A DNA stretch of 64,000 nt from Anaeramoeba ignava BMAN (lineage: Eukaryota; Protista; Anaeramoebae). The translations under genes were made by a program, and so were the position numbers. Below, in pieces: positions 1,620 to 62,100 of the stretch; position 1 is the first letter of the stretch; every line of letters starts with the position of its first letter. The notes beneath the pieces are model-generated. The model worked only from the letters and a program-made list of their open reading frames with translations, searched no databases and had not been told where the DNA came from. The stretch spans positions 186,001 through 250,000 of the forward strand of contig JAPDFW010000064.1 in NCBI GenBank assembly GCA_028826165.1, given 5' to 3'.

Positions 1620-3775
1620 ATGAATTCAAATTTAAATTCAAAACAAGGAAATAATGATATTTGGTTTTTGGGTCAAAATTATTTTGTTTCACTTACAAAA
1701 GATAAATCACAAAAAATTGCAAAATTTACTCAATTAATTTTACCTCAATTTAAATTTAAAAACCAAAATCAAAATCAAAATCAAATTGAAAATCAAAATG
1801 AAATTGAAAATCAAAATCAAAATCAAATTGAAAATCAAAATCAAAATCAAATTGAAAATCAAAATGAAAATGAAAATCAAAATCAAAATCAAATTGAAAA
1901 TCAAAATGAAATTAAAAATGAAAATGAAAATGAAAATCAAAATCAAAATCAAAATCAAAATCAAAATCAAAATCAAAATCAAAATGAAAATCAAAATCAA
2001 AATCAAATTCAAAATGAAAATCAAAATCAAAATCAAAATCAAAATCAAAATCAAAATCGAAAATCAAAATCAAAATCAAAATCAAAATCAAAATCAAAAT
2101 CAAAATCAAATTATAAAATTAGAAACAAATGGATTTATAATTGTTCTACTTTTTGAAAATGGAAAAGTAATTGAATGTTTACAAGATCTAGAAAATGATT
2201 CAAATCAAAATCCTCAAGAAATTGAAATTGAAAATATTCAAAAAGTAACTGTTGGTTTTTCAACTTTTGGAATATTAACTTTTGAAGGAATTGCATTCAA
2301 AGCAACACCACAAATTAATTCCGAATTTGCAAATCAATTTATCAATATTTCATCATTAATTGAAGATGCAAATGATAGAATAATTCAAGATATTGTTTCT
2401 GGAGCTAATTCATTTTACTTATTAACTTCAAATCAAAATGCTTATGGAATGGGTTCAAATAGGCATGGTCAACTTGGTTTTGATTCTGAAACACTTGAAG
2501 AAACAGAAAAACCAGTTTTAATGATGAAAAATGTTTCTAAAATATTTACAGGAAATTCTTCAGGAACTGTTTTTCTTTTAAATTCAAATCAAGAATTGTT
2601 TGGATGCGGATATAATAAATATGGTCAATTAGGGATAGGCTCAAAAAGTTTAAATGAAAAATTAACCAAAATCCAAAATATTCCAAAAGGCAAAATAATT
2701 GATATCAAAACTGGATTAAATCATTCAATAATGTTAATTGAAAATGAAAATGAAAATGAAAATCCAAAAAGAAAACTTTATTCATGTGGAGATTATGAAT
2801 CAAATGGAATTATTAATCATAATTCAAAAGAAGATATCACAGAATTTACTGAAATCAAATTATCTTTATTTGAAAATGATGATATTATTGATTTTTCTGT
2901 TGGAGGTGCTCATACTTTGATTTTAACATCCAAATCAAAATTAATAAGATTTGGGAATGATTATGGAATTCCACACAATTCTGGAGATACATATTATCGA
3001 CCAATACCTATTCAAATTGAACTTCCTAATTTAAGATTTAATGAAGATATTTCTAATTATCATATTTCTTGTGGTTCTTTCAATTCATTTCTTTATTATT
3101 CTCCTTTTCTTTCTCCTTTTTCCAATCTTGAAGAAGATTTGATAAAACTATTTAGAAGAAAAGAATTTTGTGATATTTCATTTAAAACCAAAAATGGAGA
3201 AATAATTGAAGCTCATAAATTAATATTGAAATATAGATTAAATCAAAATCAAAAACAAAATCAAAAAATGGAATTGAAAAACTTAAAGAAATTATTTCAA
3301 AAAATCAATTAAAGAATCAAATCAAATATTTGAAATGATTTATTCAAACAATTCCAAAATAAATCCAAAATTATATTCTGAAATTAAAGAAATTATAAAT
3401 TCAAATGAAAAAATTGAAGAAACAATGAAAAGAATTTATTTAAATGAAAATGAAAATGAAAAAGATTTTATAATTGAAAGAAAAGAAAAACAATATAAAT
3501 TTCCAAAATTAATATTAATAATGAGAAGTGAATTATATCGAGGAATGTTTTTATCTGTAACAGAAGATAATTCTAATAAAGTTACAGATTATAGTGAATT
3601 AAGTAATAAATCATTTCAAATATTTGAATATTGGATTTATTCAAATCAAATTAAAGAAGATATTCAAATTACACAAGAAATAATTAATGAAATTCAAATT
3701 GGAATTGATTATTTTCAATTAAATGAAACAAATCCAAATTTATTTGATTTATTAATTAACAAATTTAATAATTAA
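1620..3775 (+). CDS. RCC1-repeat / BTB-BTB protein, paralog 1 (frameshifts at about 2060 and 3250-3300)
   Basis: RCC1 blades (GSNRHGQLG, GYNKYGQLG, SVGGAHTLIL), BTB start FCDISF...IEAHKLIL, second BTB-like KDFII...FPKLILIMRSELYRGMF...FEYWIYS. Colinear with the two downstream paralogs. Confidence 0.85.
1762..2110 (+). repeat. Coding hexamer microsatellite (AAAATC/AAAATG/AAATTG)n encoding poly-NQ/NE
   Basis: Directly visible; lies within the first blade region of paralog 1. Confidence 0.95.
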
Positions 3776-3952
3776 AATCAAAATTCAAATTAAAATTAAA
3801 ATTAAAATTATAATTAAAATCAAAATTAAAATCAAAATTAAAATTAAAATTAAAATTAAAATTAAAATTAAAATTAAAATCAAAATTAAAATCAAAATTA
3901 AAATTAAAATTAAAAATAAAAATTAAAATCAAAATTAAAATTAAAATTAAAA
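3776..3952 (+). repeat. (AAAATT/AAAATC)n spacer between RCC1-BTB paralogs
   Basis: Directly visible; a similar spacer lies at 5990-6090. Confidence 0.9.
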
Positions 3953-3974
3953 TTTCATTTTTCATTTTTCAAAA

Positions 3975-5995
3975 ATGAATGATTGTTTATTTTTTGGTAA
4001 AAATCAAAAACCAACTCTTTTAAAAAATGAACGAGAAAAAATAAAAAAACCAATTCAATTTAAATTTGAAAATGAAAATGAAAATGAAAATGAAAATGAA
4101 AATGAAAATGAAAATGAAAATGAAAATGAAAATGAAAATGAAAATGAAAATGAAAATGAAAATGAAAGTGAAAATGAAAATGAAAGTGAAAATGAAAATG
4201 AAAATGAAAATGAAAATGAAAATGAAAATGAAAATGAAAATGAAAATGAAAATGAAAATGAAAATGAAAATGAAAATGAAAATGAAAATGAAAATGAAAA
4301 TGAAAATGAAAATGAAAATGAAAATGAAAAACAAATTAAACAAATTTCAACAGGTGATTTATCAACAATTTTCCTTTTTAAAAATGGAAAAGCAATAGAA
4401 TATTTAAAAGAAAATGATTCAAATCAAAATCCTGAAAAATCCAAATTGAAGAAAATATTCAAAAAGTAACTGTTGGTGGTGATGATGAAGCTATTTTAAC
4501 AATAGAAGGAAATGTATTTGCCAAAGGATATAATATTAATCCAGAAAATCCAAATGAATTTATCAATATTTCATCATTAATTGAAGATAAAAATGATAGA
4601 GTAATTAAAGATATCTTTTCTGGATTTAGTTCAATTTACTTATTAACTTCAAATCAAAATGCTTATGGAATTGGTAATAATTCTTTTGGTCAACTTGGTT
4701 TTGATTATGAAACAATTTCAGAGGCAGAAAAACCAATTTTAATGATGAAAAATGTTTCTAAAATATTTTCAGGAAGTGATTCTGGTAATATTTTTCTTTT
4801 AAATTCAAATCAAGAATTATTTGGATGTGGAAATAACGAATATGGTCAACTTGGATTAGGAGAATCAAAAAAAGAAGAGAATATTCAAAAATTAACCAAA
4901 ATCCAAAATATTCCAAAAGGTAAAATAATTGATATTCAATGTGGAAGGGGGCATTCGATAATGTTGATTGAAAATGAAAATCAAAATGAAAATCCAAAAA
5001 GAAAACTTTATTCATGTGGAGATTCTCAATTTAATGGACTTGATAAAGATCTAGGTACTTATGAATTTACTGAAATCAAATCATTTTTATTTGAAAATGA
5101 TGATAATATTATTGAAATTTCTGTTGGATGTGATCATACTTTGATTTTAACATATAAAGGGAAATTAATAGGATTTGGAAATAATCATCATGGTCAATTA
5201 GGAACTAAAGATACAAAAGATCAATTAATTCCAATTCAAATTGAACTTCCTAATTTAAGATTTAATGAAAATATTTCTAATTATCATATTTCTTGTGGTT
5301 CTTTCAATTCATTTCTTTATTATTCTCCTTTTCTTTCTCCTTTTTCCAATCTTGAAGAAGATTTGATAAAACTATTTAGAAGAAAAGAATTTTGTAATAT
5401 TTCATTTAAAACCGAAAATGGAGAAATAATTGAAGCTCATAAATTAATATTGAAATATAGATTAAATCAAAATCAAAATGGAATTGAAAAACTTAAAGAA
5501 ATTATTTCAAAAAAATCAATTAAAGAATCAAATCAAATATTTGAAATGATTTATTCAAACAGAATAATAAATCCAAAATTATATTCTGAAATCAAAGAAA
5601 TTATAAATTCAAATGAAAAAATTGAAGAAACAATTAAAAGAATTTATTTAAATGAAAATGAAAATGAAAATGAAAAAGATTTTATAATTGAAAGAAAAGA
5701 AAAACAATATAAATTTCCAAAATTAATATTAATAATGAGAAGTGAATTATATCGAGGAATGTTTTTATCTGTAACTGAAGATAAATCAAATAAAGTTACA
5801 GATTATAGTGAATTAAGTAATAAATCATTCCAAATATTTGAATATTGGATTTATTCAAATCAAATTAAAGATAAAATTCAAATTACACAAGAAATAATTA
5901 ATGAAATTCAAATTGGAATTGATTATTTTCAATTAAATGAAACAAATCCAAATTTATTTGATTTATTAATTCACAAATTTAATAATCAAAATTAA
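3975..5995 (+). CDS. RCC1-repeat / BTB-BTB protein, paralog 2 (one-base deletion at about 4438)
   Basis: ORFs 3975-4469 and 4742-5995 join through the open frame IEENIQKVTVGGDDEAIL. Same architecture as paralogs 1 and 3. Confidence 0.87.
4068..4330 (+). repeat. Coding (GAAAAT)n microsatellite, about 43 copies, encoding poly-EN
   Basis: Directly visible; the same position in paralog 3 has about 5 copies. Confidence 0.95.
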
Positions 5996-6133
5996 AATTA
6001 AAATTAAAATCAAAATTAAAATTAAAAATTAAAATTAAAATTAAAATTAAAATTAAAATTAAATTTAAAATTAAAATTAAAATTAAAATAAAAACCCAAA
6101 AATTCATTTTTTTCATTTTTTTCTTTTTTAAAA

Positions 6134-7911
6134 ATGAATGATTGTTTATTTTTTGGTTCAAATCAATTACCTACAATTTTCGAAAATGAACTAAATAAAA
6201 TAACAAAAACAATTCAATTTGAAAATGAAAATGAAAATGAAAATGAAAATGAAAAACAAATTAAACAAATTTCAACAGGTTGTTTTTCAACAATTTTCCT
6301 TTTTGAAAATGGAAAAGCAATAGAATACGTAACTGAAAATCCTTCAAAAATCAAAATTGAAGAAAATATTCAAAAAGTAACTGTTGGTTGTTCAAATGAA
6401 GCTATTTTAACAATAGAAGGAAATGTATTTGTCAAAGAAGAAGATATTAATCCACAAAATCCAAATGAATTTATCAATATTTCATCATTAATTGAAGATA
6501 CAAATGATAGAATAATTGAAGATATTGTTTCTGGAGCTAATTCAATTTACTTATTAACTTCAAATCAAAATATTTATGGAATTGGTTCAAATGAATATGG
6601 TCAACTTGGTTTTGATTCTAAAACACTTGAAGAAACAGAAAAACCAATTTTAATGATGAAAAATGTTTCTAAAATATTTTCAGGAAATTCTTCTTATCAT
6701 ATTTTTCTTTTAAATTCAAATCAAGAGTTATTTGGATGTGGAAATAACGAATATGGTCAAGTTGGATTAGGAGAATCAAAAAAAGAAGAAACAAAAATCC
6801 AAAAATTAACCAAAATCCAAAATATTCCAAAAGGTAAAATAATTGATATTCAATGTGGAATGTTTCATTCAATAATGTTGATTGAAGATCAAAATGAAAA
6901 TGAAAATCCAAAAAGAAAACTTTATTCATGTGGAGATTCTCAATTTAATGGACTTGGGAGAAGGGAAGATACTTATGAATTTACTGAAATCAAATCATCT
7001 TTATTTGAAAATGATTATATTATTGAAATTTCTGTTGGATGTGATCATACTTTGATTTTAGCTTACAATTCAAAATTAATAGGATTTGGAGATAATTCTT
7101 ATGGTCAATTAGGAATTGAAGATACAAGATTAGAATCAACTCCAATTCAAATTGAACTTCCTAAATTAAGATTTAATGAAAATATTTCCAATTATCATGT
7201 TTCTTGTGGATATTATGAATCATTTCTTTATTATTCTCCTTTTCTTTCTAATCTTGAAGAAGATTTGATAAAAACTATTTAGAAGAAAAGAATTTTGTAA
7301 TATTTCATTTAAAACCGAAAATGGAGAAATAATTGAAGCTCATAAATTAATATTGAAATATAGATTAAATCAAAATCAAAATGGAATTGAAAAACTTAAA
7401 GAAATTATTTCAAAAAAATCAATTAAAGAATCAAATCAAATATTTGAAATGATTTATTCAAACAGAATAATAAATCCAAAATTATATTCTGAAATCAAAG
7501 AAATTATAAATTCAAATGAAAAAATTGAAGAAACAATGAAAAGAATTTATTTAAATGAAAATGAAAATGAAAATGAAAAAGATTTTATTATTGAAAGAAA
7601 AGAAAAACAATATAAATTTCCCAAATTAATATTAATAATGAGAAGTGAATTATATCGAGGAATGTTTTTATCTGTAACAGAAGATAATTCTAATAAAGTT
7701 ACAGATTATAGTGAATTAAGTAATAAATCATTCCAATTATTTGAATATTGGATTTATTCAAATCAAATTAAAGAAGGAATTCAAATTACACAAAGAAATA
7801 ATTGATGAAATTCAAATTGGAATTGATTATTTTCAATTAAATCAAACAAATCCAAATTTATTTGATTTATTAATTCAGAAATTTAATAATCAAAATCAAA
7901 ATCAAAATTAA
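6134..7911 (+). CDS. RCC1-repeat / BTB-BTB protein, paralog 3 (extra A at about 7272 and about 7793)
   Basis: ORFs 6134-7282 and 7353-7805. Paralogs read ataaaacta and caagaa where this copy has one more A. Corrected stop is TAA at 7909-7911. Confidence 0.87.
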
Positions 7912-7926
7912 AATCAAAATTAAAAT

Positions 7927-10261
7927 TTATTTTTTCTTTTTTGGATTTTTTGCTAAATAAAGTTGATAATCAAACCATTTAAAAGCATTTATCAAACTTG
8001 GTTTAAAATGAATTGAAGTTGGAAAAACTCCCCAAATTCTATCAATTGAATAAAGATTAAAATATTCAACAATTTTTTTTGGAGTTAAAGCATTAGAAAG
8101 GTCTTGTTTATGAACCAAAATTAAAATGACACAATCAACTAACATTGGATCATTAAGGAAAGTAAGAAAAAATTCTCTTGCTTCTTCTAATCTTTCATGA
8201 TCTTTACCATCAACAACAAAAACAAAACCATCAGTATTATCATAATAACGTCTCCATAAGGGTCTAAGATTATAACTTCCTCCAACATCCCAAACATTAA
8301 TTTCATTAAAGAAATTTGATGACTTCACAGGCTCAACATTAAAGCCTAATAACAAATAAACATTTTTGGATATTGAATATTTTTAAATATTTTTAAATAT
8401 TAAATATTTTTGAATATTTATTTTTGATTTACCAACTGTTGGAATAGTTGTTAAAATTGTACCAAGTTTTAATCTATATAAAATTGATGTTTTCCCTGAT
8501 GCATCTAATCCAAACAAAAGAATCCTTACTTGTTTAGCTTTTTGCCAAAATTTCCTTTTAGGAATTTTAAGAAAATCATTTTCAGAAAGAACATTTGGAT
8601 GAAAAATACAATCTTCATAACAAAACATTTTTGAAAAATATGCTTTTTTCCATCCATAATCTAAATTTTTAGGATCATTAATAATTTTACGATCTTTTTT
8701 TGCAGGTTGTCCAAATTGATTAATAAAAATATCTTGCCAAATCCAATTATGTGATGCAATTTTATTAAATTCCCAAGAAGTAAGTGTTAAAAGAATGATA
8801 TTATTTCGAGGTAATAACGAAAGAATTTGAATAATTTGTTCTGGTGGAAGAACCCAAAAATTTCCTAATGATTTTTGATATCGAATCTCTTCTTCAATTT
8901 CTTTCTTTTCAATTTCTTTTCTATTTTGATTTGAATTTTGATTTAAATTTTCATTTGGATTGAATTCTTCTTCTTTTTGTAAAGTAATAAAGCATGAATG
9001 AATCCATCCACATCCACAATATTTAATGGAATATTCATCTGGAATATTGATTCTCATTGGTTTGTTTAATGCTTCTATTTCTTTCTCGTTTGAATTTTGA
9101 TATTCAATCCCAAGTTGTCCAAATTTATTCACTCCAACTGAATATCCCTTTCCTTCTGAATCTAAAAAAATACAATAACTAGCTCCATATCCTCCATTTG
9201 CGAAAATATTTGTTATTTTCACATTTATGTCTGAAATAATCTCAACAAATTCCGTTTGGTTTTCTTTTTCTGGAATCCCGATGGATATTCCTCTTCCACA
9301 AACATAAACTTTCCCTTCTTTATTTAAAAGAATACTTTGAACATCTCCACATTTGATATTTTTGATTTCTCCAATGTTTTTTGGTAATTCAACTAATGTT
9401 GGGATATTTCTGTCATTTAAATCTCCCAAACCCAGCTGTCCGTTTTTGTTTTTTCCACATGAATATAATTGATTAGTTTTTGTTAATGCAATAAAATGAT
9501 AACCTCCTCCACTTATTTTTTTGATTGAATTTGATAATTTTGAAATTAGTTCAGGCTTTGATCTTGATTCATTATCACCAACACCTAATTGTCCATTAGA
9601 ATTTCTTCCCCATGAATATAAATTTCCTCTTTTAACAGTTTTTTTTTTTTGTTAAATATAAATCCAAATATTTTTAATTGAAAAAAAAATGATTTTTTTC
9701 AAATTATATTTACTTGAAATCTATAGCAAAATTAAAATCACTTCCTGTCGAAATTGATTTGATTTTTTCAGAAAATTCAAAACGAATAAAATCAATTTTC
9801 TTTTTTGGATTTGTTTGAAAAACTAAGTTAGTATAAAAAACTTCTCCATTCACAAGAACAAGTAAAGATAAAGTTCCACAATAAATCATTTGGATATTTT
9901 TCTCGATAAAATTATTGATTGGAATAATAAATTGTGATCTTTTTTGAATTAGTTTTTTATCATTTTTATTTTGAGCATTAAGTTTTTGAATTTTGATTTG
10001 ATTTTCTTTTTCATTTTCTTTTTGATTTTGTTGATAACTTGGTTTTGAAGTTAAAAGTGGAATTCCCCATAATAAAATCTTTCCTGATTTAAATCCCAAA
10101 ACAGTAATTGATGAACCACAAGAAATTCGAATTATTTCATCGTTATTTGCAATTTGATTAATAATTGGTGTTATATTAATTGGTTCATAAATTATTTTTG
10201 AAGGTGTTCCTTCATAAAGAATTGCATTATTTTGATTTGAACCACAAATAAAAATATTCAT
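7927..10261 (-). CDS. RCC1-repeat / F-box / Arf-family GTPase fusion; exons 10261-9714, 9628-8433, 8345-7927
   Basis: Splicing restores FAIDFK|[15 protein letters not shown] (RCC1) and TIPTVG|FNVE (Arf switch I). F-box: [14 protein letters not shown]...[14 protein letters not shown]-loop [25 protein letters not shown]. Confidence 0.9.
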
Positions 10262-10287
10262 TTTGAAAAGAGAAAGAAAAAAATGAA

Positions 10288-10688
10288 AAATTTAAAATAG
10301 AAATTAATAATAATTTATTTATAATTTATTTTAAAATTATATCAAAATATTTAGAAAATTGATTAAAACCTTAATATTTATTATTTCAAAATTTATATTT
10401 TATTTATTAAAAATTTTAATATATTTTTATTTCAAAATTTAAAATATAAATTAATAATAATTTATTTATAATTTATTTTAAAATTATATCAAAATATTTA
10501 GAAAGTTTATTAAAACCTTAATATTAATTATTCCAAAATTTATATTTTATTTATTAAATATTTTAATATATTTTATTTCAAAATTTAAAATAGAAATTAA
10601 TAATAATTTATTTATAATTTATTTTAAAATTATATCAAAATATTTAAAAAGTTTATTAAAACCTTAATATTAATTATTCCAAAATTTA
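10288..10688. repeat. About 2.7 tandem copies of a 146-147 bp AT-rich unit in a divergent intergenic region
   Basis: Anchor AAAATTATATCAAAATATTT recurs at 10333, 10480 and 10626. Confidence 0.85.
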
Positions 10689-10774
10689 TGTTCCTTTTTA
10701 CCTTCTTTTTATTTTTTTCATTTTTTTCATTTTTTCATTTTTTTCATCATTTTCATCATTTAATTTTTTTTCAA

Positions 10775-42600: not shown

Positions 42601-45600
42601 AGCTTTTTGTTTCATTGAAAGAAATTTGTATCACAAGCCAGAAAAATAGAAATGCGGAACAACTCAAAAAATTGCAAATTATGCAAAAGAAAAAATCCAA
42701 ATCACAAAATAATCAACAAAGCACAAAAAAACAGAAACAAAAACAAAAGAAAAAGAAAAAGAAAAACGAGGGTTTCCAACTCGAGGATTTATTGAAAAGA
42801 GAATACCAATTTGCAATTGAACAAAATCACCAAAGCGCAAATTATTCCAATTTGAATTTTCATTTTCATCATCTTCTCTATAATCTATTTGTGGAGCGCA
42901 CGTCCTTTAGAGCAAAAGATCAAAAAATGCTCAATTTATACATTTTAAACTTCTTTTTGGATATTTTTTCAGAGGAATTTAGTGATATATTTTACAAAAA
43001 CCAAATATGGAAAGTGATGATACTGAAGGTTTGCGAGGTAAATCATTTTTCATTTACAAACAAAACAATTTTTTTTTCTCTTAGTGAAAAATATTGATTG
43101 AGATTTTTGATGAATTTAGGAAGACAAAATTTTAGACAAAATCATAAAGAAAAAACTACATGACTTTTTCTGCTATTTCCAGTCTTTGTATCCAAAGCAG
43201 AAGTCTCAGATTTCCGTCTTATTTGAAATTATGAAAGAAAACAAAGAAAATGCTTATATAATTAAGGACATGACAAAATTGATTATAAAATTGCTGAGAA
43301 TTGATTTCGGGAAAATCTCCCACGAACTTGTGGAAATGGATGTGTTTAATTTTTATTTGGAAACCAATTTACAGCTGCTGAAGATGAAGAGTGTTGAACA
43401 GTTCCAAGCAGCATTCAATGCCAAAAGTGTGAGTTCGGAAATTTACTACAAACTTCAATATAAAATTTTCAAGGTTCTTGACTATTTATTCGCAAACGAG
43501 GAAATATGCATACGCTCACTTTCCAATACGAGCTGGGGAATATCGATAATATCCTTGGTTTTTGAAAAAAGCACAAAGAAACTTTCACTAAGCATTATGT
43601 TTCGGATGATGTGTTCCGTTAAGTCTACAGCAACTGCAGATATGGAAGGATGGTTTTTCCAGATGTACATGGAGCTTGTAATGACAATTTCTCAGAGATA
43701 CACATCAAAACCTTTGGAATACAGTATAACCCCAAAGGAAGTTGTGCAGACAAACAGCATTGATGATTCCAAAAACACAATCAAGATTCCCAGTACCCTT
43801 CCGGAGTATCCTATTGTGTACATCCAGGAGTTGCTGAGCTTAGCAACAGAAGCAATCAGCATCAATAGAGAGTCTCTGCAGAAATTACTGCCACAAATCG
43901 GTATCTTTGAGATGCTCATCTCGCTGATGTCGATACCCGAATTAAACACCATTGTTTCACGGTTCATTTTGCGGATGCTGAACGAGTTGTTGTATTGCTC
44001 GAAAATAAACGTAGATAGATTCAATAAAATCTCAGGGTTTAAAAACTTAGGCAATTTGCTTTTGGATTCGCAGCAAAATAACTCAGATGTAGAGATTTTC
44101 CAGCTCCTGCTCAGCATGATTGTGAACACCGGAAAATTCGATAAGGAAAATAATTATTTGATCCAGAATTACTACTTGGTTTCAATGATGTTTGAGCTAT
44201 ATTACAAGCTCGAGGATCATAGTTTCTTTTCCCAGTTGCTTGACATATTTTGCGAAATTTGCGAAAAATCAACCCAAAATATATCGTTTTGCTACACTGC
44301 TAGACTGCTTGAGCATTTGAGCACAGCAGTGTGTACAATCCATGAGGATTTGATTCTCCAAAAAGTCTCACGATTGATCAAGATAATATGCTCTTATGGG
44401 ATAACGATTGAGGATATGCACACACTATTCCGTCCACTGGCAAAATTGCAAGAAAACAAGAAATTGCCGTATCTTGTTTTTCTGTTTCGAATTCTGCATG
44501 GGATGGTGGAAAAAAGTGAGCATTTGGATCAACCGTTGGGATTTTTCGACTTCCACTTCGGTCATTTGTCACTTCCAAATGTGGAGAAATGGCCAAACAA
44601 TGGATGGGGGTTTTATACATGGATGCGCTTTGAAAGAGAAACAATTAATTCCACAGTGAGCCTCGACATGCAACCACGGATATTTAGTTTTTTCGATGAT
44701 TCGGGAAAAGGTATAGAGTTCTTTTTTCTTGTCAAGGATTCTCAAAAGACACAGAAACAGAGCCAAGACAACAAAAAAAAGGATCTAACTATAATTTTTG
44801 TTCTAAGAGTGCTGACACCTACAGACTCAGCAGAAGTAGCTTTTCCCTTTGATTTCCCGCAGAAACAATGGAACTTTGTTGCAGTGTCTCAATCTCCCAT
44901 CAAAGGATACTCATCCTCAAGTAAAGTGCGTGTTTATCTCAACTTTGAGATGGCTGAACAAGCGTTCTCAAAGTATTTGACTGTTCCCGATTTGACAAAA
45001 AACAAGGTTGGATCGCGATCCTTTTTTGAAACTCCTTTCCCAAACTCTTACGGTCCAAAAATGAATTTCTATCTCCCAAAAATCAAAAATCCCATTTCTG
45101 GTGAGAACGAAGATTTTTCTGAAACAAAACCGAAAAGAAAAAGCAAAGCAAAACACGATAATTCCAGTCCCCAGACAGACGCAAAAATCCAGGGAAAAAG
45201 CGACGAAGGAAATAAACAAGAGAAATCAGGCGGTTGGGATCAAAAAGAACGACTCAAGCAGCTCACACCAACAAATAGCCTTGAATCTTACTCCATCCCG
45301 CAGGAATTAGGCCATCAGAACCAGATCTATCAAAAAATGGAATGGGATTACTCTTTTGTTGGTGAAATGGGGATTGTGTGCTTTTTCAAGAAGTCTATGG
45401 AAAACTCTCATTTTTCACGAATTTGCAAATCAGGACCGCAATTCATTCCTTTTTTCGATGTATCTGGGGTAACTGTTCCTGTTACAACTGATCCTTACAT
45501 ACAATTTGTGATCGAATTAAACCAGAGCATTCTTCTCGCATACCATCCCAAGGCGACCAAAAAGCACTATTGTTTGGACTTGAGTCCTGGATCAACAAAA

Positions 45601-48600
45601 AAAAGTTCTGCAATCATGTCTGGAGTGGCCTCATTGTTTTTCTATGATCTCAAAGGGCTTATCACGAGTCTTGGTGGTATTTCGATATTCTTCCCTTTTT
45701 TTATAGATTTCGAACAGCTTTTCCCAAATTTCCGCGACTCAATATTTTCCAGCGAAGAGATTGAAATCACACACTTAGATTACATATTCAGCATCTTTGC
45801 AGATATTCTATGCTCGACAAAGGAGATGCAAGATTCTTTTGTTGAGGAGTATTCTTTTGCGTTAATTTCCAAAATGATCGGAGATGTTGATCCTTTATTC
45901 ATCTCCAAAAAAATAGTTTCTGTGATCTTAAAAATGCTTCTTCAAGCAAGAAGCACAAAGTTTGCAAATGATCTTTTCTTTAATCTTGTCCTGAGCATCG
46001 ACAACTGGATCTACTGTTCGTTTGAGATTCACAAGGGTTTATTGGGGATTATGACAAATGTGATAAAACAAGATTTAGACAACGAGATGCTGAAGGAAAT
46101 CGATGTATCGATACAAATGCTGATTGATATCCTAACGTTTTTCTATTGGCTCAAGCCCGAAGAATTTTCTCGAGGCACAGAACCCAAATTCTTCCCCAAA
46201 ACAAATCGGTATACAAATCGGGAGTTGTCCAGCAAGGAAGTTACTGAACTCAGATCGATGATCTTGATCTTGATATACAGCAAACTTTCCAAATTGCGCA
46301 CTGAGAACACAGAGAACAATCGAAAGCAGATCAAGGAATCTCTTCTTTTGGTTATCTATTCATTTTGCATTTTGCAGCACAAAGAAACCTATTTTGGTGA
46401 GTTGGGGATGTTTGTCGGATTTTTACTGCAAGAATCCAAAACAAATTCAAAATTGCCACAAGCACCCATTCTTGATACAGCGCTGATCAATCCTCTTGTG
46501 TTTCTCCTTGATACACACGAATCTCCTTCACGCAGGAAGCTGCTTGAATTCATCTACGATCTGGACACACTTGGGTTACAAATCAGCGAGATCAACTCCA
46601 AATTTGATCCTAAAAGAGGATATATTATTGTCAATGAGATTCTTTTGAAATATGAACTGACAAAAGATCTTTCTCACTTCCTTTTCCAGATCATGGTTTC
46701 ACCTTCAATTCCAGCACCAAAAGTTGGGAACGATTTTGAGATACAAAGACCATGGGTATTTTTCACCATTCTCAAGTTTATCAAGAAGGACCAAAATTCC
46801 GAAGCGCTTTTGTTTGCGAATAAAGTGCTCGATATTATCAAGAAACAGAATAAAAACCCAAAGGGGTTATTGGATGCATTTGGATGGCAATTTCGGCTAA
46901 TTGAGCTTGTGGATTTCGATAATGTTGTTGAAAGGGAGCAAATTTTCTATCGAAAAAGAACAACATCAGAAGAAACAGAAGACGAAGTTTCGGCCAAAAA
47001 GAACGAGGCCAATGATTTTGTGTTTGATTTTTTCAGGTGGATTTTGTCCTATAATTTGTTGAACCACAAAACAGGCTTACAGTTCCTTTTGCAAACAATA
47101 GCCTTTGTTGGCTTATCCACAATTTCCAAGCACAAATACGAAGAAATTGTTGTTCGCAGAATTCTTTTCGATGTTTTCCAGGAAATTGCACCAAATATTA
47201 AAGATCTTACTAAGAAATCCAATACCTTTATTTTCAATAATATATATGGGCTAGTCGAGGTTGTTCGCAGGTATTTCTATTTCGACTTCAGCTATGAAAT
47301 TGTAAAACTCGACACCCCAACAAACGAAATGCCTGCAAAGAAAAGTTCTGAGCCATCCGCTGAAGAGGAAAAACGAGAAAGAATCAAGGTGAAGTGCAGA
47401 ACAAAGCACACACATATCGACGACTTCATGCTCATTTCCGGTGCAATGGACTTTTTCGAAAAAAGCAATTTCTGGATCAAATTCGCGCTTTCTCTTGATG
47501 ACAAGAAAAAAATGCAAGTATTTACCAGAAACCTTATCATCTTGATCGTGCATTTTCTGCCAAGTCTCGATTCGCATATTTGTCATTTTTATATTGACCA
47601 GCTGAATATACTGATCAACTTGAAAATGGACGACAAAATTCTTATTGATATCATCGCCATTCTTTTCCAGTACTTGAGGCTCTATTCCAACATTGCTCTT
47701 CCTGAAAATACAGAAACAAATCTCGAGCGTCCCAGCTTTACCGAAGAAGACACAGATCAGACACAGAAGTTTAACGAAGATGATCCAAAAAAATCCGAAG
47801 AGTTTTTCGAGATTGATCTTGGAAGCGATAACGAAAATTATAATGACAACGATAATGATAATGATAATTCTAATTCTAATCCGAATCAAGCATACGATAT
47901 GCTAAGTAGTGAAAGTACCACTGAAACAGACAGAAGAAACGAGTCTATGCACGATATCTCCACTGGAAATATTTTCCTTGATTTTGTTTCCGGTGAGACT
48001 CGCAAGGAAATTTTCTGGTTGTTGGTGTCCATTTTCGAGAACCATTATTCTATTCTTCGTCCAATCATTTTGGATGAGGAAAATAAGGTGATTATGTCCG
48101 AACTTTTTTCCAAAACTCATGGGAAAGAGTTGAATGGAAATGATATCATCACAGAAGAGACTTTCCACACCAAAAAATGGAGGTTTGCTTGGCGAAAGTA
48201 TTTTCTTCCGAGGATTCTGAGAATGAAGAAAAAAAACATCGCCTCTCTTGGGCACATCAACAAGCAAATTGCTATTTATTTGCAGTCAAGTCGTGTCAAG
48301 CTTTATGAAGAAAATGTTCAGATTTTCCAGCAAAAGAAAATTCATCATCGAGTTGTAATTGGAAGAACAGAAAAAAGGCTTTCCAAGATTAGAGAAAGAA
48401 TGAAATTTTTGCAAGTGTTGGAAAACAGAAAGAATCGTTCGATGATCAAGAAACGTAAACGCGCATTTCGGCAATTAATCTCCAATAAGTTTTTATGGTA
48501 TCAAGTTTTGCCAAAATCAAAAGAATATTTTAGATACTTTAAGCTTGATAAAACTGAGGATTTGTCAAAAACACGACCCAAAATGAGAATTAACTACAAT

Positions 48601-51315
48601 TATGATTCTCATTTTGATGCTTTAATGTATATGAACAAAAAAAAATTTGAGAAAAAGGTTAAAACAAGAGAAGAAAAAGAAGAAAAAGAAAAAGAAGAAG
48701 AAAAAGAAAAAGAAATTGAAATTGAAAATGAAAATGAAAAAGAAATTGAAATTGAAAATCGAAAATCAAAATCAAAATAAAAATAACGAAAATCAAAAAA
48801 TCATCTCCAAAAAAGAAAAAGATTCAGAAAATAAAATCAAAACTGTTAATGATTTCGAGATTTATGAACTCGAATTTTATCGATCAGGAAAAAAAAATCA
48901 AGATAATATACTTAAGGAAGTTCTTGAAAACATGAATAAAGCAATTAATACACTTGCAGTCGAGTGTGAAATGATTTCTGGATTATTTAAATATTCGGGA
49001 ATTCTTGAAATTACAGAAATGGAAATGAACTTTTATATCGATTTCAAGGATTCTGGAAATAAAATGCATATCCCGATGAATGACAAGAAATGGAAATTAA
49101 AGAACATCATAGAAGTGCACAGAAAAAGACACAATTTCCAACCAGGATCTCTTGAAATAGAATTTGACAACCACAAAAGTTACTTTTTCAAGTTTTCTTT
49201 CGAAAATTCCAATGCAGTTTTCCAGAAATTAAGCGATTCTAAATTGACAAGATTCAATCGCGATCCGGATTTAGTTGAAGAGCTAAGGAATTTAACAAAA
49301 CAATGGCAAAATTATCAACTTTCCAACTTTGATTATTTACTCAAACTAAATTTCATTTCTGGGAGAACATTCAATGATTTGTCCCAATATCCTGTTTTTC
49401 CTTGGATTTTTTCTGATTATGAATGTGAAGAGCTTGATCTGAAAAACCCTGAAGTTTATCGTGATTTATCAAAGCCAATCGGAGCATTGAATCCAAAAAG
49501 ATTGAAAATTTATTCTGAACGATATACTAATATGATTGAAAATACTGATGGTTTGCCACCATTTTATTATGGATCTCACTATTCAAGTCCAGGTAAAAAA
49601 AAAATAAGAAAAAGAAAAACTTAAAATAATTTGATTTGATTTGATTTGTTTTATTTTGTTTTTTAGCAAGCGTTGTATTTTATTTAATTCGTTTAGAACC
49701 ATTTACAACTCAATGCATTTATTTACATGGAGGGAAATTTGACCATCCAGACAGACTATTTCATTCTATCCCATTAACTTGGCGATCCTGTTTATCGAAT
49801 TCAGCTGATTTGAAGGAATTAACACCTGAATTTTTCTATTTCCCAGAATTTCTTTTGAATCAGAACAATTTTAATTTTGGAATTCAGCACACAAACCAGA
49901 AGGTGGAAGATGTAGAACTTCCGAAATGGGCAAAATCACCGGAAGATTTTGTCAGAATCAACCGCAAAGGTCTTGAAAGCGAGCATGTTTCGGAAACGAT
50001 TCACATGTGGATCGATTTGATCTTCGGATATAAGCAAAGAGGAGAAGAGGCGATCAAGGCTCACAATGTATTTTACTTTTTGACTTATGACAACATTGAT
50101 TTCGACTCTATCACAAACAAGGAAGAGCTCAACACAACGTTTTCTCAAATTGAAAATTTTGGACAGACACCGAAACAGATATTTTTCAAGCCGCATCCAC
50201 AAAGAATCAAGAAAGTAACCACAGAAACCAAAAAGCCTATTCCGATCCAAGAGATTTTCAATACAATCAGCATCTTCTCAGCAACATTATCAGATCACTC
50301 GATTGTCTATGTGTATCTTTCTCACCAAACGACAGAACTGGCGTGGTTTGGGATGCTGCAGAAACTGTATCTCATTGATTCCAAGCGCAATTTCTTTGTG
50401 AAAAAATGGGCGCTCAGTAAATCAAATACCCAGCAAGCGCCTGTTGTGAATCTCGAGAGTGAAAAGAGCGCAAAAAATTCCAAAATGATTGGCACAGTTT
50501 TTGCTGAAGGTGTTAATTACTATAACTGCTTCTCAATTGCGCCAAGCGGAGATTTACTTTTTAGTTGTGGGTTTTGGGATAACTCCTTCATTGTTTCCAA
50601 CTCCGAAAACGGAGTTCTTGTTAACAGAATCGTGCATCACAAGGATGTTGTGACATGTATAAAAACAGAATCAAACAGATTATTGGCAACGGGCTCAAGA
50701 GATTGCACTGTCGTTGTTTGGGATTACGATCTTGAGAAAAGACCACTGGAAATTATCCCCAGATACACTCTTTCTGGACATCGAAGCGAAGTGACTGCGG
50801 TTGCAATGAGCTCTGTTTGGGATATGCTTGTTACAGGTGCCAAGGACGGTGTGTGCATAATCTATTCTTTATATTCAGGATCTTTTTTCAAAAAATTTAA
50901 GATTCGCAATCCTTCCAAAGTTCTTTTTGTTCCTGGTACCGAACATAACAATGTGGAAATCTCAATGATCCGCATTCTGTCAAATGGGCAAATTCTAGTT
51001 TACTCAATAAACGATCCGCTTTTATCTCTTTATTCGCATCTTGGGCGTTTTATTTCAAATATTCCCTTGAGTTCTCCTATCACAAGTTGGGAATTTATTC
51101 ATGATGAGGAGTTTTTAATTACTGGATCAAGAAATGGTCTTCTTCAAATTTTCAACATTCCAAATTTGTCTTTGGTTCATGATTATAATATTCAGACTCC
51201 AATTTGTTATATTTGTATAACTCCTGATAAAGATAATTTTTTAATTGGAGGAACTAAAGGTGCTTTATTAATTGGGAATTTAGTTTCAAGTGATGAAATC
51301 AAAAACTTAAATTGA
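39650..51315 (+). CDS. BEACH-domain protein (helical repeats, ConA-like lectin, PH, BEACH, WD40); multi-exon, frameshift at about 48770
   Basis: ConA-like: GFFDF...KWPNNGWGFYTWMRFE. BEACH: WQNYQLSNFDYLLKLN..SGRTFNDLSQYPVFPW, YGSHYSSP|ASVVFYLIRLEPF, FDHPDRLF, KELTPEFF, WIDLIFGYKQRG, NFGQTP. WD40: HKDVVTC, TGSRDCTVVVWD. Exon 1 is 39650-39799; intron 49593-49666. Confidence 0.93.
39965..41082 (+). repeat. Intronic (TAAATAAAATTA)n AT-only satellite in BEACH intron 1 (39800-41085)
   Basis: Directly visible; regular at the start, noisy later. Confidence 0.88.
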
Positions 51316-51394
51316 ATAATTTTTTTTTTGGATGTGAATAGAATTTTTCCAAAGAAAAAAAATAATTCTAAGCATTTACATTTCAAATTCGAAA

Positions 51395-52435
51395 CCAAAA
51401 TCAAAATCAAAATCAAAATCAAAATCAAAATCAATTTCAAAATCAAAATCAAAATCAAAATCAAAATCAAAATCAAAATCAAAATCAAAATCTAAATCAA
51501 AATCAAAATCAAATTCAAAATCAAAATTAAAATTAAATTCAAATTCAAAATCAAATTCAATTTCAATTTCAAAATCAAAATCAATTTCAATTTCAATTTC
51601 AAAATCAATTTCAAAATCAAAATCAATTTCAATTTCAAAATCAAAATCAATTTCAATTTCAAAATCAAAATCAAAATCAATTTCAAATTTAAAACCAAAA
51701 TCAAAATCAAAATTAAAATCAAAATCAAAATCAAAATCAAATTCAAAATCAAAATCAAAATCAATTTCAAAATCAATTTCAAAATCAAAATCAAAATCAA
51801 ATTCAAAATCAAAATCAAAATCAATTTCAAAATCAAAATCAAAATGAAAATCAAAATCAAAATCAAAATCAATTTCAAAATCAAAATCAAAATCAATTTC
51901 AAAATCAAAATCAATTTCAATTTCAAATTTAAAATCAAAATCAAAATCAAAATCAATTTCAAAATCAAAATCAATTTCAATTTCAATTTCAAAATCAAAA
52001 ATTTCAATTTCAAAATCAATTTCAAAATCAATTTTAAATTCAAAATCAATTTCAAAATCAAAATCAAAATCAAAATCAAAATCAAAATCAATTTCAAAAT
52101 CAAAATCAAAATCAAAATCAATTTCAATTTCAAAATCAATTTCAAAATCAATTTCAAAATCAAAATTAAAATCAAAATTAAATTTAAATTCAATTTCAAA
52201 ATCAATTTCAATTTCAAAATCAAAATCAATTTCAAAATCAATTTCAAAATTAAAATCAAAATCAAATTCAAAATCAAAATCAAAATCAAAATCAAAATCA
52301 ATTTCAAAATCAAAATCAAAATCAAATTCAAAATCAAAATCAAAATCAATTTCAAATTCAAAATCAAAATCAAAATCAAAATTAAAATCAAAATTAAAAT
52401 CAATTTCAATTTCAATTTCAATTTCAAATTCAATT
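51395..52435 (+). repeat. 1-kb compound hexamer array (AAAATC / AATTTC / AAATTC)
   Basis: Directly visible; starts 80 bp after the BEACH stop codon. Confidence 0.92.
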
Positions 52436-59178: not shown

Positions 59179-62100
59179 TTAAAACAACCCAAAACCAAAA
59201 TAAACAATAAGAACCAAGAAAAGATGAAGAAGAGGATTGAAAACAAGAGAAGAAGAATCAGAACGGACATCACCAAGTCTCATTTCAAAAGAAGTTACAA
59301 CAAAAGAACAACCATCAGAAGCAGTAACTTCTACTTCAAAAATATTTGAGTAATATTTGGGGATTGTACCAACAAAAGTGTGAGTTGAGGGATAGAAAGT
59401 AATCCATTCAGGAAGAGGAATGCCACCAGAAATCTGAGCAGAGTAACTAAGTTCAGAATAGGGATCAGAAAAAATGGAATCGGGAAAAGTATAATCAAAA
59501 GAAACAAGAGCGGAAAGAGTAGGAATTTCGTTCGCAACAACAGGAGCAACGTTAGTGATATCCAGATTCACCTTCTGGGTCGCATTTGAACATCCGTCAG
59601 AAACAGTCAAATCGATCTGGTAAACTTGAGTGCAAAGAGAGCTTGGTACAGAAACATCAAATTTGCGAGTGGAAGGTGTGAAAACAATCCAATTTGGAAG
59701 AACTCCGCCAGAAGATGGCTTTGCAGAATAGGTCAGATTGGAGACTGAACTATCCAGATCTTCGAAGAAACTCGCTGAGACTTCGAAACTACGAGTCTCT
59801 TTGTTATGGAAGCTTTCAGAAGGCACTAATCCCTTGGTTTGAGGTGCCAAGTTTTGGATCGTTACATTGAACGGAGTAGTTGCGCTCTGTCCGCACTCAT
59901 CTGTTGTTGTTACAGAAAGATAGTAAGTCTCGTGGCAAATCCAATCCGGTGCTGTGCCTGAGAAAACTGCTGTGCCAGCGTTGAACTTCATCCAGCTAAG
60001 AAGGCTTGTGCCGTTGGCAAAAGATGCGGAATATGTCAAAATAACAGAGTCGTTGTCGCTGAACGTCGATTTTGGAACATTGTATGAGAACGCAAGCAAA
60101 CTGAATGTTTGAGGCGGGATTGTTGCTGTCACACTCGGCTTTGTGTTGACAACCTTGAAGTTGAAAATATCGTATGCTTGACTGCAGTAATCAGATCCAG
60201 TCACTTGTATGTCAAAATTCGCACCACAAAAAGCTGATCCTGTCGGTTTTCCGTTGAATGTCAGATTTGAGGAATGGAAAGTGATCCAATCGGGAAGTGC
60301 TTGTCCATTGGTCAAAGTTGCCCCGTAGCTTACTGGCCGTAGAGTGGGTGAATCTGGATCAACAAATGTTCCGCCAGATAAGACATAACTGAAAAAAACA
60401 CTGTTTGTTGAGAAGTTGGAAACAGGCATTGACACATACGGCGAAAGATTGTTGATCAAGAAGCTGAACGACGTTGATGCTGTTGTGCATCCGTCAGTAA
60501 CGCTGACAGTGATAGGTATAGAATCCCCAGTGCAAAGTGTTTGTGAAGGACTTCCTGTGAATTTGGGTGCAAAGGGATTCGAGTCAAATGAAAGCCATGC
60601 AGGAAGAGATCCGCCTTGGCTCTTTGCTGACCAGGAAAGGAGAGAAGAAGGAGTGTCTGCATCGTTAAACGTTGCCACTGGAACATTGAAATTGCATGAA
60701 TTCGCAGACACATTTACTGTTCGATCTTGCAGAGGCTCAACAACAACAGGCGCCTGATTCTGGATGGTGAGCATAAATGTCTGCGATGTTGTGTTGCACC
60801 CGTCGTTGACGCTTACCAATACGATTGTGGATATATTGCAGAGACTAGACGCGTCTCCCGTGAAATTGCGCTTCGCTGAGTCAAAGCTAATCCATCCAAG
60901 TCCAGATATGTTGGTGCTGATAGTCAATGAAGGTGTGTCTGCATCCGTCACATATCCTGCGGGAAGAGCGAACCAGAAACTCTTCGCAAAAAAGGTTTGT
61001 TGAGACAATGGTTTTTCTATTTGCGGTGGTGTATTCACAAAAGTCACTGTGAAATTATCAAGAAAGTAATTGCATCCATCGGAAACCTTCAGTTGAACCA
61101 GAACCTGTGTATAGCATGTTACGGGCGCTGTTCCTGAAAAGTTGAAATGCGTACCGTTTGTCCCGAAATTCATCCATGCTGGCAAACTACCTCCACTGGG
61201 TTGAGAAGTAGCTGTCAATGTCAATCGGTTGGGATCGGCATCTTCGAAAAAATCACTTTTGCGAAGAAGAATCTGAAAGCTTTGGTTGTGATGGAACTCA
61301 TAATCAGAGATGAATGCTTTCCGAACTGGAGGCGCGTTTCTTATTTGCAATGTAAATTGTCCTGTTGTGTTTTGACATCCATCGCTGGCCTTGACATTGA
61401 TAGCTAGATCCTGCGAGCACATTTCATATGCAACACTGACATTGAACGTTCTTGTCACGTTGTTGAAGACAATCCACGAAGGTAATTGCGTGCCGTTTGG
61501 AAGCGTTGCTAAAAAGCTAAGAGTCGCATTTTCAGGGTCTTGGAAGGCATTTGAAGGGATTGTGTATGTGATGTTCTGGAGAGTTGTGACAATTTGAGGA
61601 GGGATATTGTTTGAATAAACAGGTGGGTCATTAACAAGCGTTACAGGAAAGAAGATGGACTTTGACAGACAGGCATCAGAAGCTGTGAGATTTACAATGA
61701 AGGATTGACCGCAAATAGGCCCAGTCCAAACACCAACAAAACTTTTCTCGGTACTGCGGAACTGGAACCAATTTGGAGTGGCTTGTCGAGAAGGATAGAG
61801 CTCAGAATAATACTGCAAAGTGTCAACGTCACTAAATGTTGTGCTAAATGACAATGTGTATGTTTGGTTGAATGTCAATGTCTGGGGAAGAATTTTGTTT
61901 GCTATCAAAGGTCCTGGATTGTTTACATAAAGCTGAAATTTCGCGCTTGTCGAATTGCATCCATCACTTGCAATAACCTTCAGTGGATAATATTGTGAGC
62001 ATTGAAAAGGTGCTACTCCATAAAGACGGCGCGCTGCAGACTGGAACATCAACCAACCTGAAATTGACACATCGCTTCCATTCTGGTATGTCAATGAGTA

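Follow-up and report, generated by a model that had tools for sequence, protein, structure and literature searches.

What might a protein do that carries, on a single chain, an RCC1-like propeller, an F-box and a complete Arf-type GTPase domain from which the catalytic glutamine of Arf proteins is missing? The question is raised by a gene of the anaerobic amoeba Anaeramoeba ignava, which lies on the minus strand (positions 10261-7927) of a 64,000-nt stretch of contig JAPDFW010000064.1; "the window" below means that whole stretch, positions are counted along it, and features lie on its minus strand unless stated otherwise. The locus is an intact, selectively constrained gene, and it belongs to a family in which the catalytic glutamine is absent from every member read. 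The reading we favor, at somewhat better than even confidence, is that its product serves as the substrate receptor in an SCF (Skp1-Cullin-F-box) ubiquitin ligase, in which the F-box would dock on Skp1, the propeller would be the likelier recognition module, and the Arf domain would be an accessory nucleotide-binding module without glutamine-dependent hydrolysis.

The fusion of the three domains is independent of any assumption about splicing, because exon 2 (8433-9628) is a single uninterrupted frame that holds RCC1 blades, a low-complexity linker, the F-box, a 55-residue linker, and the G1 motif (P-loop) and switch I of the Arf domain up to PTVG. Splice sites and frames read directly from the sequence give a coding sequence of 2163 nt (720 amino acids) in three exons. 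Exon 1 (9714-10261; start codon 10261-10259) encodes residues 1-182 and two bases of codon 183, comprising the N-terminal RCC1 blades (Pfam RCC1/WD40_RLD) and a low-complexity loop (residues 70-95), and ends at the donor AA/GTAAAT. Intron 1 (9629-9713; 85 nt, GTAAAT...AAAAG) is of phase 2 by frame arithmetic, and its removal (...AIDFK/) yields a canonical RCC1 repeat start. Intron 2 (8346-8432; 87 nt, GTAAAT...TTAG, phase 1) interrupts the Arf interswitch at PTVG/FNVE, the same point at which the paralog loci break, and exon 3 (7927-8345; stop codon 7929-7927) encodes the remaining Arf domain, from FNVE to KKKK. When the exons were searched singly against Pfam, the Arf profile matched at positions 6-49 at the end of exon 2 and at positions 48-170 in exon 3 (E 7.4e-30), and is therefore continuous across intron 2. 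The database model P0001 (NCBI KAJ5075561.1, 720 amino acids, named "adp-ribosylation factor 1") has the same 720 residues: the three exon translations are found inside it at offsets 0, 183 and 582, and the junction at intron 1 matches exactly. This protein served as the reference for further comparisons. The original prediction, that one frame joins RCC1 blades, an F-box and a complete Arf domain, is borne out by the open frame of exon 2, the Arf profile across intron 2 and the identical database protein.

The seven-bladed RCC1-like propeller (8977-10261, with intron 1 inside) occupies residues 1 to ∼400 and is matched by Pfam WD40_RLD at 197 bits (cut-off 150). An AlphaFold2 model, built on an alignment of 17 family sequences (mean predicted local distance difference test score, pLDDT, 78.7), gives seven four-stranded blades with a pLDDT near 90 and a disordered loop at residues 70-95. 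The propeller is followed in the model by a long helix (417-442), the short helices of the F-box (445-488; pLDDT 53-76), a linker, and a complete Arf fold (548-714; pLDDT 75-91) in which switch I is poorly defined.

The F-box (8707-8871; residues 436-490, ending WIWQDIF) is matched by the Pfam F-box-like profile at 28.8-30.6 bits (cut-off 24.3). Searched as a single sequence against solved structures, it gave no significant match; a family profile made from 17 segments matches ∼45 solved F-box proteins, with FBXL5 the best (1.3e-10) and FBXO3, FBXO4, FBXW7/8, beta-TrCP and Skp2 among the others (1e-10 to 1e-4); F-boxes solved in complex with Skp1 are matched at 1e-10 to 1e-5. The partners that such a domain would need are encoded in the A. 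ignava genome, where there is a Skp1 gene (62.9 bits) and where cullin profiles give 18 matches on at least 8 loci. The Skp1 gene (L001 900-1620, G000:C55) is cut into very short exons and lies directly downstream of several hundred bases of a (TATATT)n-like repeat.

The Arf-type G domain (7954-8532, with intron 2 inside; residues 549-712) covers positions 6-170 of the 174 of Pfam Arf (PF00025) at 159.9 bits (cut-off 22.3), and its best solved relatives are Arf1 chains (1.8e-46). The P-loop (GLDASGKT, 8488-8511) is intact. At G3 and the start of switch II, the sequence reads DVGGS (8275-8289): a Ser codon (AGT, 8277-8275) that differs from both CAA and CAG by at least two bases stands in place of the catalytic Gln (Arf1 Q71). 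G4 reads HKQD for NKQD (8101-8112), with His opposite Arf1 N126, and the same His occurs in the closest paralog, P0002. The G5 region reads FPTSIH (8008-8025), where Arf1 has (Q/S)TCAT(S/T), so that the Cys-Ala pair is lost and PTSI stands opposite TCAT. Alignment to solved Arf1 chains places Ser, His and PTSI opposite Q71, N126 and TCAT, in agreement with the DVGGS and HKQD motifs first described for this gene. The canonical Arf genes of A. ignava retain DVGGQ, NKQD and CAT.

Much else is kept. The P-loop Lys, the switch I Thr (T48), the GFNVE interswitch, the DxxG motif (D67/G70), and the Lys and Asp of NKxD (K127/D129) are all present, as is the hydrophobic effector triad, whose equivalents (F51/W66/Y81) are invariant in 17 of 17 family proteins. 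The domain therefore shares G1, switch I, the interswitch, DxxG and the effector triad with canonical Arf1, including that of A. ignava, to which it is 46% identical; it differs from it in Q71 to Ser, in N126 to His, in the lost Cys-Ala of G5, and in having neither the N-terminal Gly nor the amphipathic helix. As the original prediction had it, this C-terminal Arf domain, which begins at residue 549, offers no N-terminal myristoylation site. The segment preceding G1 has a hydrophobic moment of 0.42, a value matched by 64% of shuffled sequences, while the A. ignava Arf1 helix reaches 0.62, matched by 2.4%. An internal amphipathic helix was considered and rejected: some members from outside Anaeramoeba resemble the Arf N-terminal helix by eye, and none convincingly beats its shuffles. 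The Arf domain of the studied protein probably still binds guanine nucleotide, because only the G4 Asn and the G5 motif have changed among the contact residues. Change at the first position of G4 is tolerated: Rho GTPases work with TKxD.

The loss of the glutamine extends well beyond this gene. Nine loci in the A. ignava genome have the RCC1/F-box/Arf layout (C65, which is the studied gene, and C20, C115, C46, C126, C59, C139, C106 and C55); the matches at C55 and C139 are interrupted by stop codons, and the other seven have no stops and an untruncated Arf domain. The closest paralog, P0002 on C20, is 83-84% identical overall. Its locus (L004; G000:C20:50392-53850) has the same two intron positions, with a second intron of ∼640 nt compared with 87 nt in the studied gene. 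Two contig pairs, C46/C126 (WDVGGA/SKQD) and C59/C139 (WDIGGG/NKQE) (loci L009, L010, L012, and L016), have the same motifs within each pair and near-equal scores, and may be haplotigs or very recent duplicates.

Outside of A. ignava, the same three domains occur in the same order in A. flamelloides (P0273), Pelomyxa schiedti (three proteins), Arcella intermedia, Pyxidicula operculata and Amoeba proteus, as well as in the prokinetoplastid Apiculatamorpha spiralis (two proteins) and in several metagenomic proteins. The proteins from Arcella, Pyxidicula, Amoeba proteus and Apiculatamorpha are derived from transcripts, and in these the domain order is found on one mRNA. Among the 17 aligned members, Pfam identifies RCC1 and Arf in all 17, F-box-like in 14 and F-box in seven. 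The catalytic Gln is found in none of these 17 proteins and at none of the nine A. ignava loci, the set that the reading of Q71 covers; the entries from Mastigamoeba, Euglena and Thecamonas discussed below lie outside it. Gln is present in 139 of the 186 other Arf domains collected for comparison. The replacing residue varies with lineage: seven A. ignava loci have S, G, M, A, A, G and G, and the other two read WEVSGG and WDVGVA; the region in A. flamelloides reads DVCSG; all three Pelomyxa proteins have Glu; and Pro is found in Arcella, Pyxidicula, Amoeba proteus, both Apiculatamorpha proteins and four metagenomic proteins.

The lineages also differ in how much of the remaining GTPase signature they keep. 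In members from outside Anaeramoeba, the other G motifs are canonical in nearly all, and the Arf domain is the best-conserved part of the protein (55% mean pairwise identity, vs. 32% for the propeller). Family Arf domains from Anaeramoeba are 43-50% identical to A. ignava Arf1, vs. 53-67% in other lineages; G4 begins with H, T or S in the Anaeramoeba paralogs, three of which have lost G5. The Arf module of Anaeramoeba is under relaxed constraint and is becoming a pseudo-GTPase in some paralogs. A separate case is the fungal protein model P0177 (Collybiopsis confluens, 320 amino acids), in which an F-box-like segment is fused directly to a fully canonical Arf (DVGGQ) and a propeller is absent; either the fusion arose independently or the gene model is an artefact.

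Constraint within the studied protein is unevenly distributed. The ratio of nonsynonymous to synonymous substitution rates (dN/dS) was estimated by the Nei-Gojobori method from exon-by-exon codon alignments of a single pair, the studied gene and the P0002 gene on C20; the method is crude in such an AT-rich genome, and the ranking of the domains is the usable result. For the whole protein, dN/dS is 0.48, so that the gene is not a pseudogene. The F-box is the most conserved part between the paralogs (dN/dS 0.12; one of 50 residues differs), followed by the propeller (0.30-0.36). The Arf domain (0.64; 44 of 163 residues differ) is the least constrained of the folded domains, with only the short inter-domain linker having a higher value, and within it the switch II part reaches 0.81 (16 of 50 residues differ).

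In a phylogeny of the Arf domain alone, the family does not form one clade, and long Anaeramoeba branches (0.25-1.44, vs. a median of 0.13) dominate the tree. An approximately unbiased (AU) test does not reject a single clade of fused Arf domains (p 0.437; difference in log-likelihood 3.8). We assign a low probability to a far-reaching scenario: the proteins with an RCC1 propeller, an F-box and an Arf domain lacking Gln would be one ancient, unnamed ARF paralog that arose once, before the split of Amoebozoa, Discoba and the Anaeramoeba lineage, and was then lost many times. Its defining trait would be an Arf domain independent of a GTPase-activating protein (GAP), which SCF-mediated self-destruction and not hydrolysis would switch off, or which would pass Arf effectors to the ligase, and the expansion to nine loci would be tied to a remodelling of membrane traffic around the symbiosome.

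The original prediction did not recognize the three-domain architecture, which is in fact on record. Supplementary table 1 of Vargová et al. (2021; PMC8358228) contains Arf1-type proteins of Mastigamoeba balamuthi, MbaArf1e and MbaArf1f, described as "RCC, F-box-like", together with the related entries TtrArlX1 of Thecamonas ("Kelch repeats, RCC, F-box") and EgrArf1h of Euglena ("RCC1"). As described in that table, the two Mastigamoeba proteins share the three domains and their order with the studied protein, the Arf1-like G domain again being C-terminal. The accompanying text states that some lineage-specific ARF proteins bear BTB or F-box domains, and that ARFs have been recurrently recruited into ubiquitin circuits; such entries are treated as lineage-specific innovations, without analysis (Vargová et al., 2021; PMC8358228). 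The family occurs in several eukaryotic supergroups and so is no lineage-specific innovation. In G4 and G5, degeneration has gone further in the Anaeramoeba copies than in those amoebozoan copies that were read. Our literature search found no paper discussing the RCC1/F-box/Arf architecture for Anaeramoeba. The architecture is thus catalogued but unstudied, and the gene examined here is already annotated.

Two better-characterized systems provide partial likenesses. TRIM23/ARD1 (RING - B-box - coiled coil - Arf), correctly named by the original prediction as a precedent for the fusion of a ubiquitin ligase (E3) with an Arf domain, also places its E3 module N-terminal to the Arf domain, which lacks N-terminal myristoylation and mediates partner binding and relocalization (PMC12075517). 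It differs in being itself a RING E3 and not a cullin adaptor, in having no propeller, in being limited to animals and their relatives, and in that GTP cycling is reported for its Arf domain; the Pfam matches of the studied family include neither a RING nor a B-box. HERC1, which contains RCC1-like domains (RLDs) and a HECT ligase domain, likewise unites such propellers and ubiquitin-ligase activity in one protein and is functionally linked to ARF: through RLD2 it binds ARF1, and through RLD1 it makes ARF proteins release GDP (PMC6692442). The ARF partner of HERC1 is, however, a separate protein and its ligase domain is HECT, whereas the studied protein carries its Arf domain in cis and would be linked to a ligase by an F-box.

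Taken as an SCF substrate receptor, the protein would work as follows. The F-box would dock on Skp1 within the SCF ligase. The seven-bladed propeller would be more likely than the Arf domain to recognize the substrate, because the adjacent RCC1-BTB genes described below pair RCC1 propellers with BTB domains, and because in members from outside Anaeramoeba the propeller is the part that varies. The original prediction had assigned substrate binding to the Arf domain; with three adjoining RCC1-BTB genes, the propeller is at least as good a candidate, and that assignment is weakened. The C-terminal Arf domain would serve as an accessory guanine-nucleotide-binding module, unable to use Gln-dependent, GAP-assisted hydrolysis; it would then act as a long-lived "on-state" or switch-less surface and not as a cycling switch, and that surface may serve localization or partner binding. 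That the Arf domain is conserved and the propeller variable outside Anaeramoeba fits the pairing of an unchanging accessory module with a recognition module that varies. We infer Skp1 binding, nucleotide binding, impaired hydrolysis and the identity of the substrate-binding domain, and several observations weigh against one or another part of this account. The change of N126 to His, the loss of the G5 Cys-Ala pair and the highest dN/dS among the folded domains are all compatible with lost nucleotide binding, and the P-loop Lys itself is lost in two relatives, P0003 (Lys to Arg, with an altered DxxG) and A. flamelloides P0273 (Lys to Asn). At the position equivalent to Gln61 of Ras, Pro and Glu behave unlike other substitutions, and "hydrolysis-dead" may therefore not apply to the whole family. 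The spliced transcript, finally, is a prediction from the sequence and the database protein model.

The changed G motifs and the high dN/dS of the Arf domain give some weight to a different account, which we regard as unlikely: that the Anaeramoeba Arf domain is a decaying, nucleotide-free pseudo-GTPase, a remnant of an older functional fusion, and that the protein works as a plain RCC1-propeller F-box receptor. No other folded domain evolves as fast as the Arf domain (44 of 163 residues differ, against one of 50 in the F-box), the Anaeramoeba branches are long, identity to A. ignava Arf1 is lower than in other lineages, the G4 and G5 motifs and in two relatives the P-loop Lys have eroded, and the segment before G1 is not amphipathic. 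The studied protein nevertheless keeps the G1 Lys, T48, DxxG, the Lys and Asp of NKxD and the invariant triad; the changed first residue of G4 need not abolish binding, given the functional TKxD of Rho GTPases; and the Arf domain is retained at all nine loci, without truncation in the seven that have no stops. The erosion bears also on what the original prediction proposed, namely that a GTP-locked Arf domain acts as bait, an integrated decoy at the substrate position of an F-box protein that captures Arf effectors or GAPs, host or bacterial, for SCF ubiquitylation. Of the "GTP-locked" state, the missing Gln has stood; the lock itself extrapolates from Arf1 Q71L, the altered G4 and G5 and the sister paralogs without a P-loop Lys disfavor a maintained GTP state, and the fast evolution of the Arf domain relative to the F-box fits erosion equally well. 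Bait would be consistent with the absence of Gln in every member read, with the invariant effector triad and interswitch, which make the effector face look preserved, with the placement of the Arf domain C-terminal to the F-box, the usual place of substrate domains, and with switch II being the fastest-changing part between the two closest paralogs; Anaeramoeba, moreover, has bacterial symbionts and expanded trafficking regulators (PMC11550330). The dN/dS values of the Arf domain and of switch II are, however, below 1, and come from a single pair of paralogs. Outside Anaeramoeba it is the Arf domain that is most conserved and the propeller that is most variable, the opposite of what a decoy in an arms race would show; the protein has a complete propeller, which could bind substrate itself; and no partner for the Arf domain is known so far. 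We consider the bait model doubtful.

The propeller could also promote nucleotide exchange or release in the Arf domain of its own chain, in the manner of HERC1 RLD1, so that the ligase would be controlled by a switch contained within one protein. Ran has RCC1 as its exchange factor, the HERC1 precedent links RCC1-like domains to both ARF1 binding and GDP release (PMC6692442), and the three parts occur in a fixed order in all members; ∼150 residues, including the F-box, separate the propeller from the Arf domain, and we hold such an arrangement to be quite improbable. A predicted complex of the propeller (1-405) with the Arf domain (540-720) scored 0.01, a value that, with controls absent, counts neither way. 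That two or three neighboring genes were wrongly joined by annotation or assembly has a probability close to nil: it is refuted by the single open frame of exon 2 across RCC1 blades, F-box and Arf P-loop, the Arf profile continues exactly across intron 2, and the layout is shared by nine paralogous loci and by transcript-derived proteins of four other genera.

In the usual picture, an ARF protein is a small switch of one domain, turned off by a GAP. The family described here wires the Arf fold permanently to a cullin-ligase adaptor and, in the members read, always does so without the residue for GAP-assisted hydrolysis, which suggests a different control logic: either a constitutive interaction surface, or switching off by degradation. 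Along with the spread of the family across supergroups, it is new that the loss of Gln is a family-wide trait and no quirk of one gene, and that the nine A. ignava loci, at different stages of G-motif erosion, form a natural series from GTPase to pseudo-GTPase. The family also adds to the known expansion of trafficking regulators in Anaeramoeba.

The surroundings of the gene contain further adaptors of related design. Three tandem RCC1-BTB genes at window positions 1620-7911 (plus strand) are convergent with the RCC1-F-box-Arf gene; their RCC1 repeats lie at 1786-3309, 4742-5992 and 6134-7279, and their BTB domains at 3335-3772, within 4742-5992, and at 7353-7802, respectively. Like the studied gene, they pair an N-terminal RCC1-like propeller with a cullin-adaptor domain, in their case BTB; unlike it, they have no GTPase domain. 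Close kinship between the studied propeller and those of these neighbors was considered and rejected, as the nearest is only 29% identical. Human RCBTB1/2 and the F-box/RCC1 protein FBXO24 are also RCC1-propeller cullin adaptors and are not known to carry a GTPase domain.

Base composition of the window is ∼20% G+C, with positions 44001-52000 and 60001-64000 reaching 30-43% G+C; an Rfam search of this GC-richer part matched no family. Upstream of the gene start at 10261, the intergenic region is filled by a 147-bp unit repeated 2.7 times at 96% identity (window 10287-10689); on its far side, at 10688, starts a divergently transcribed gene for V-ATPase subunit G.

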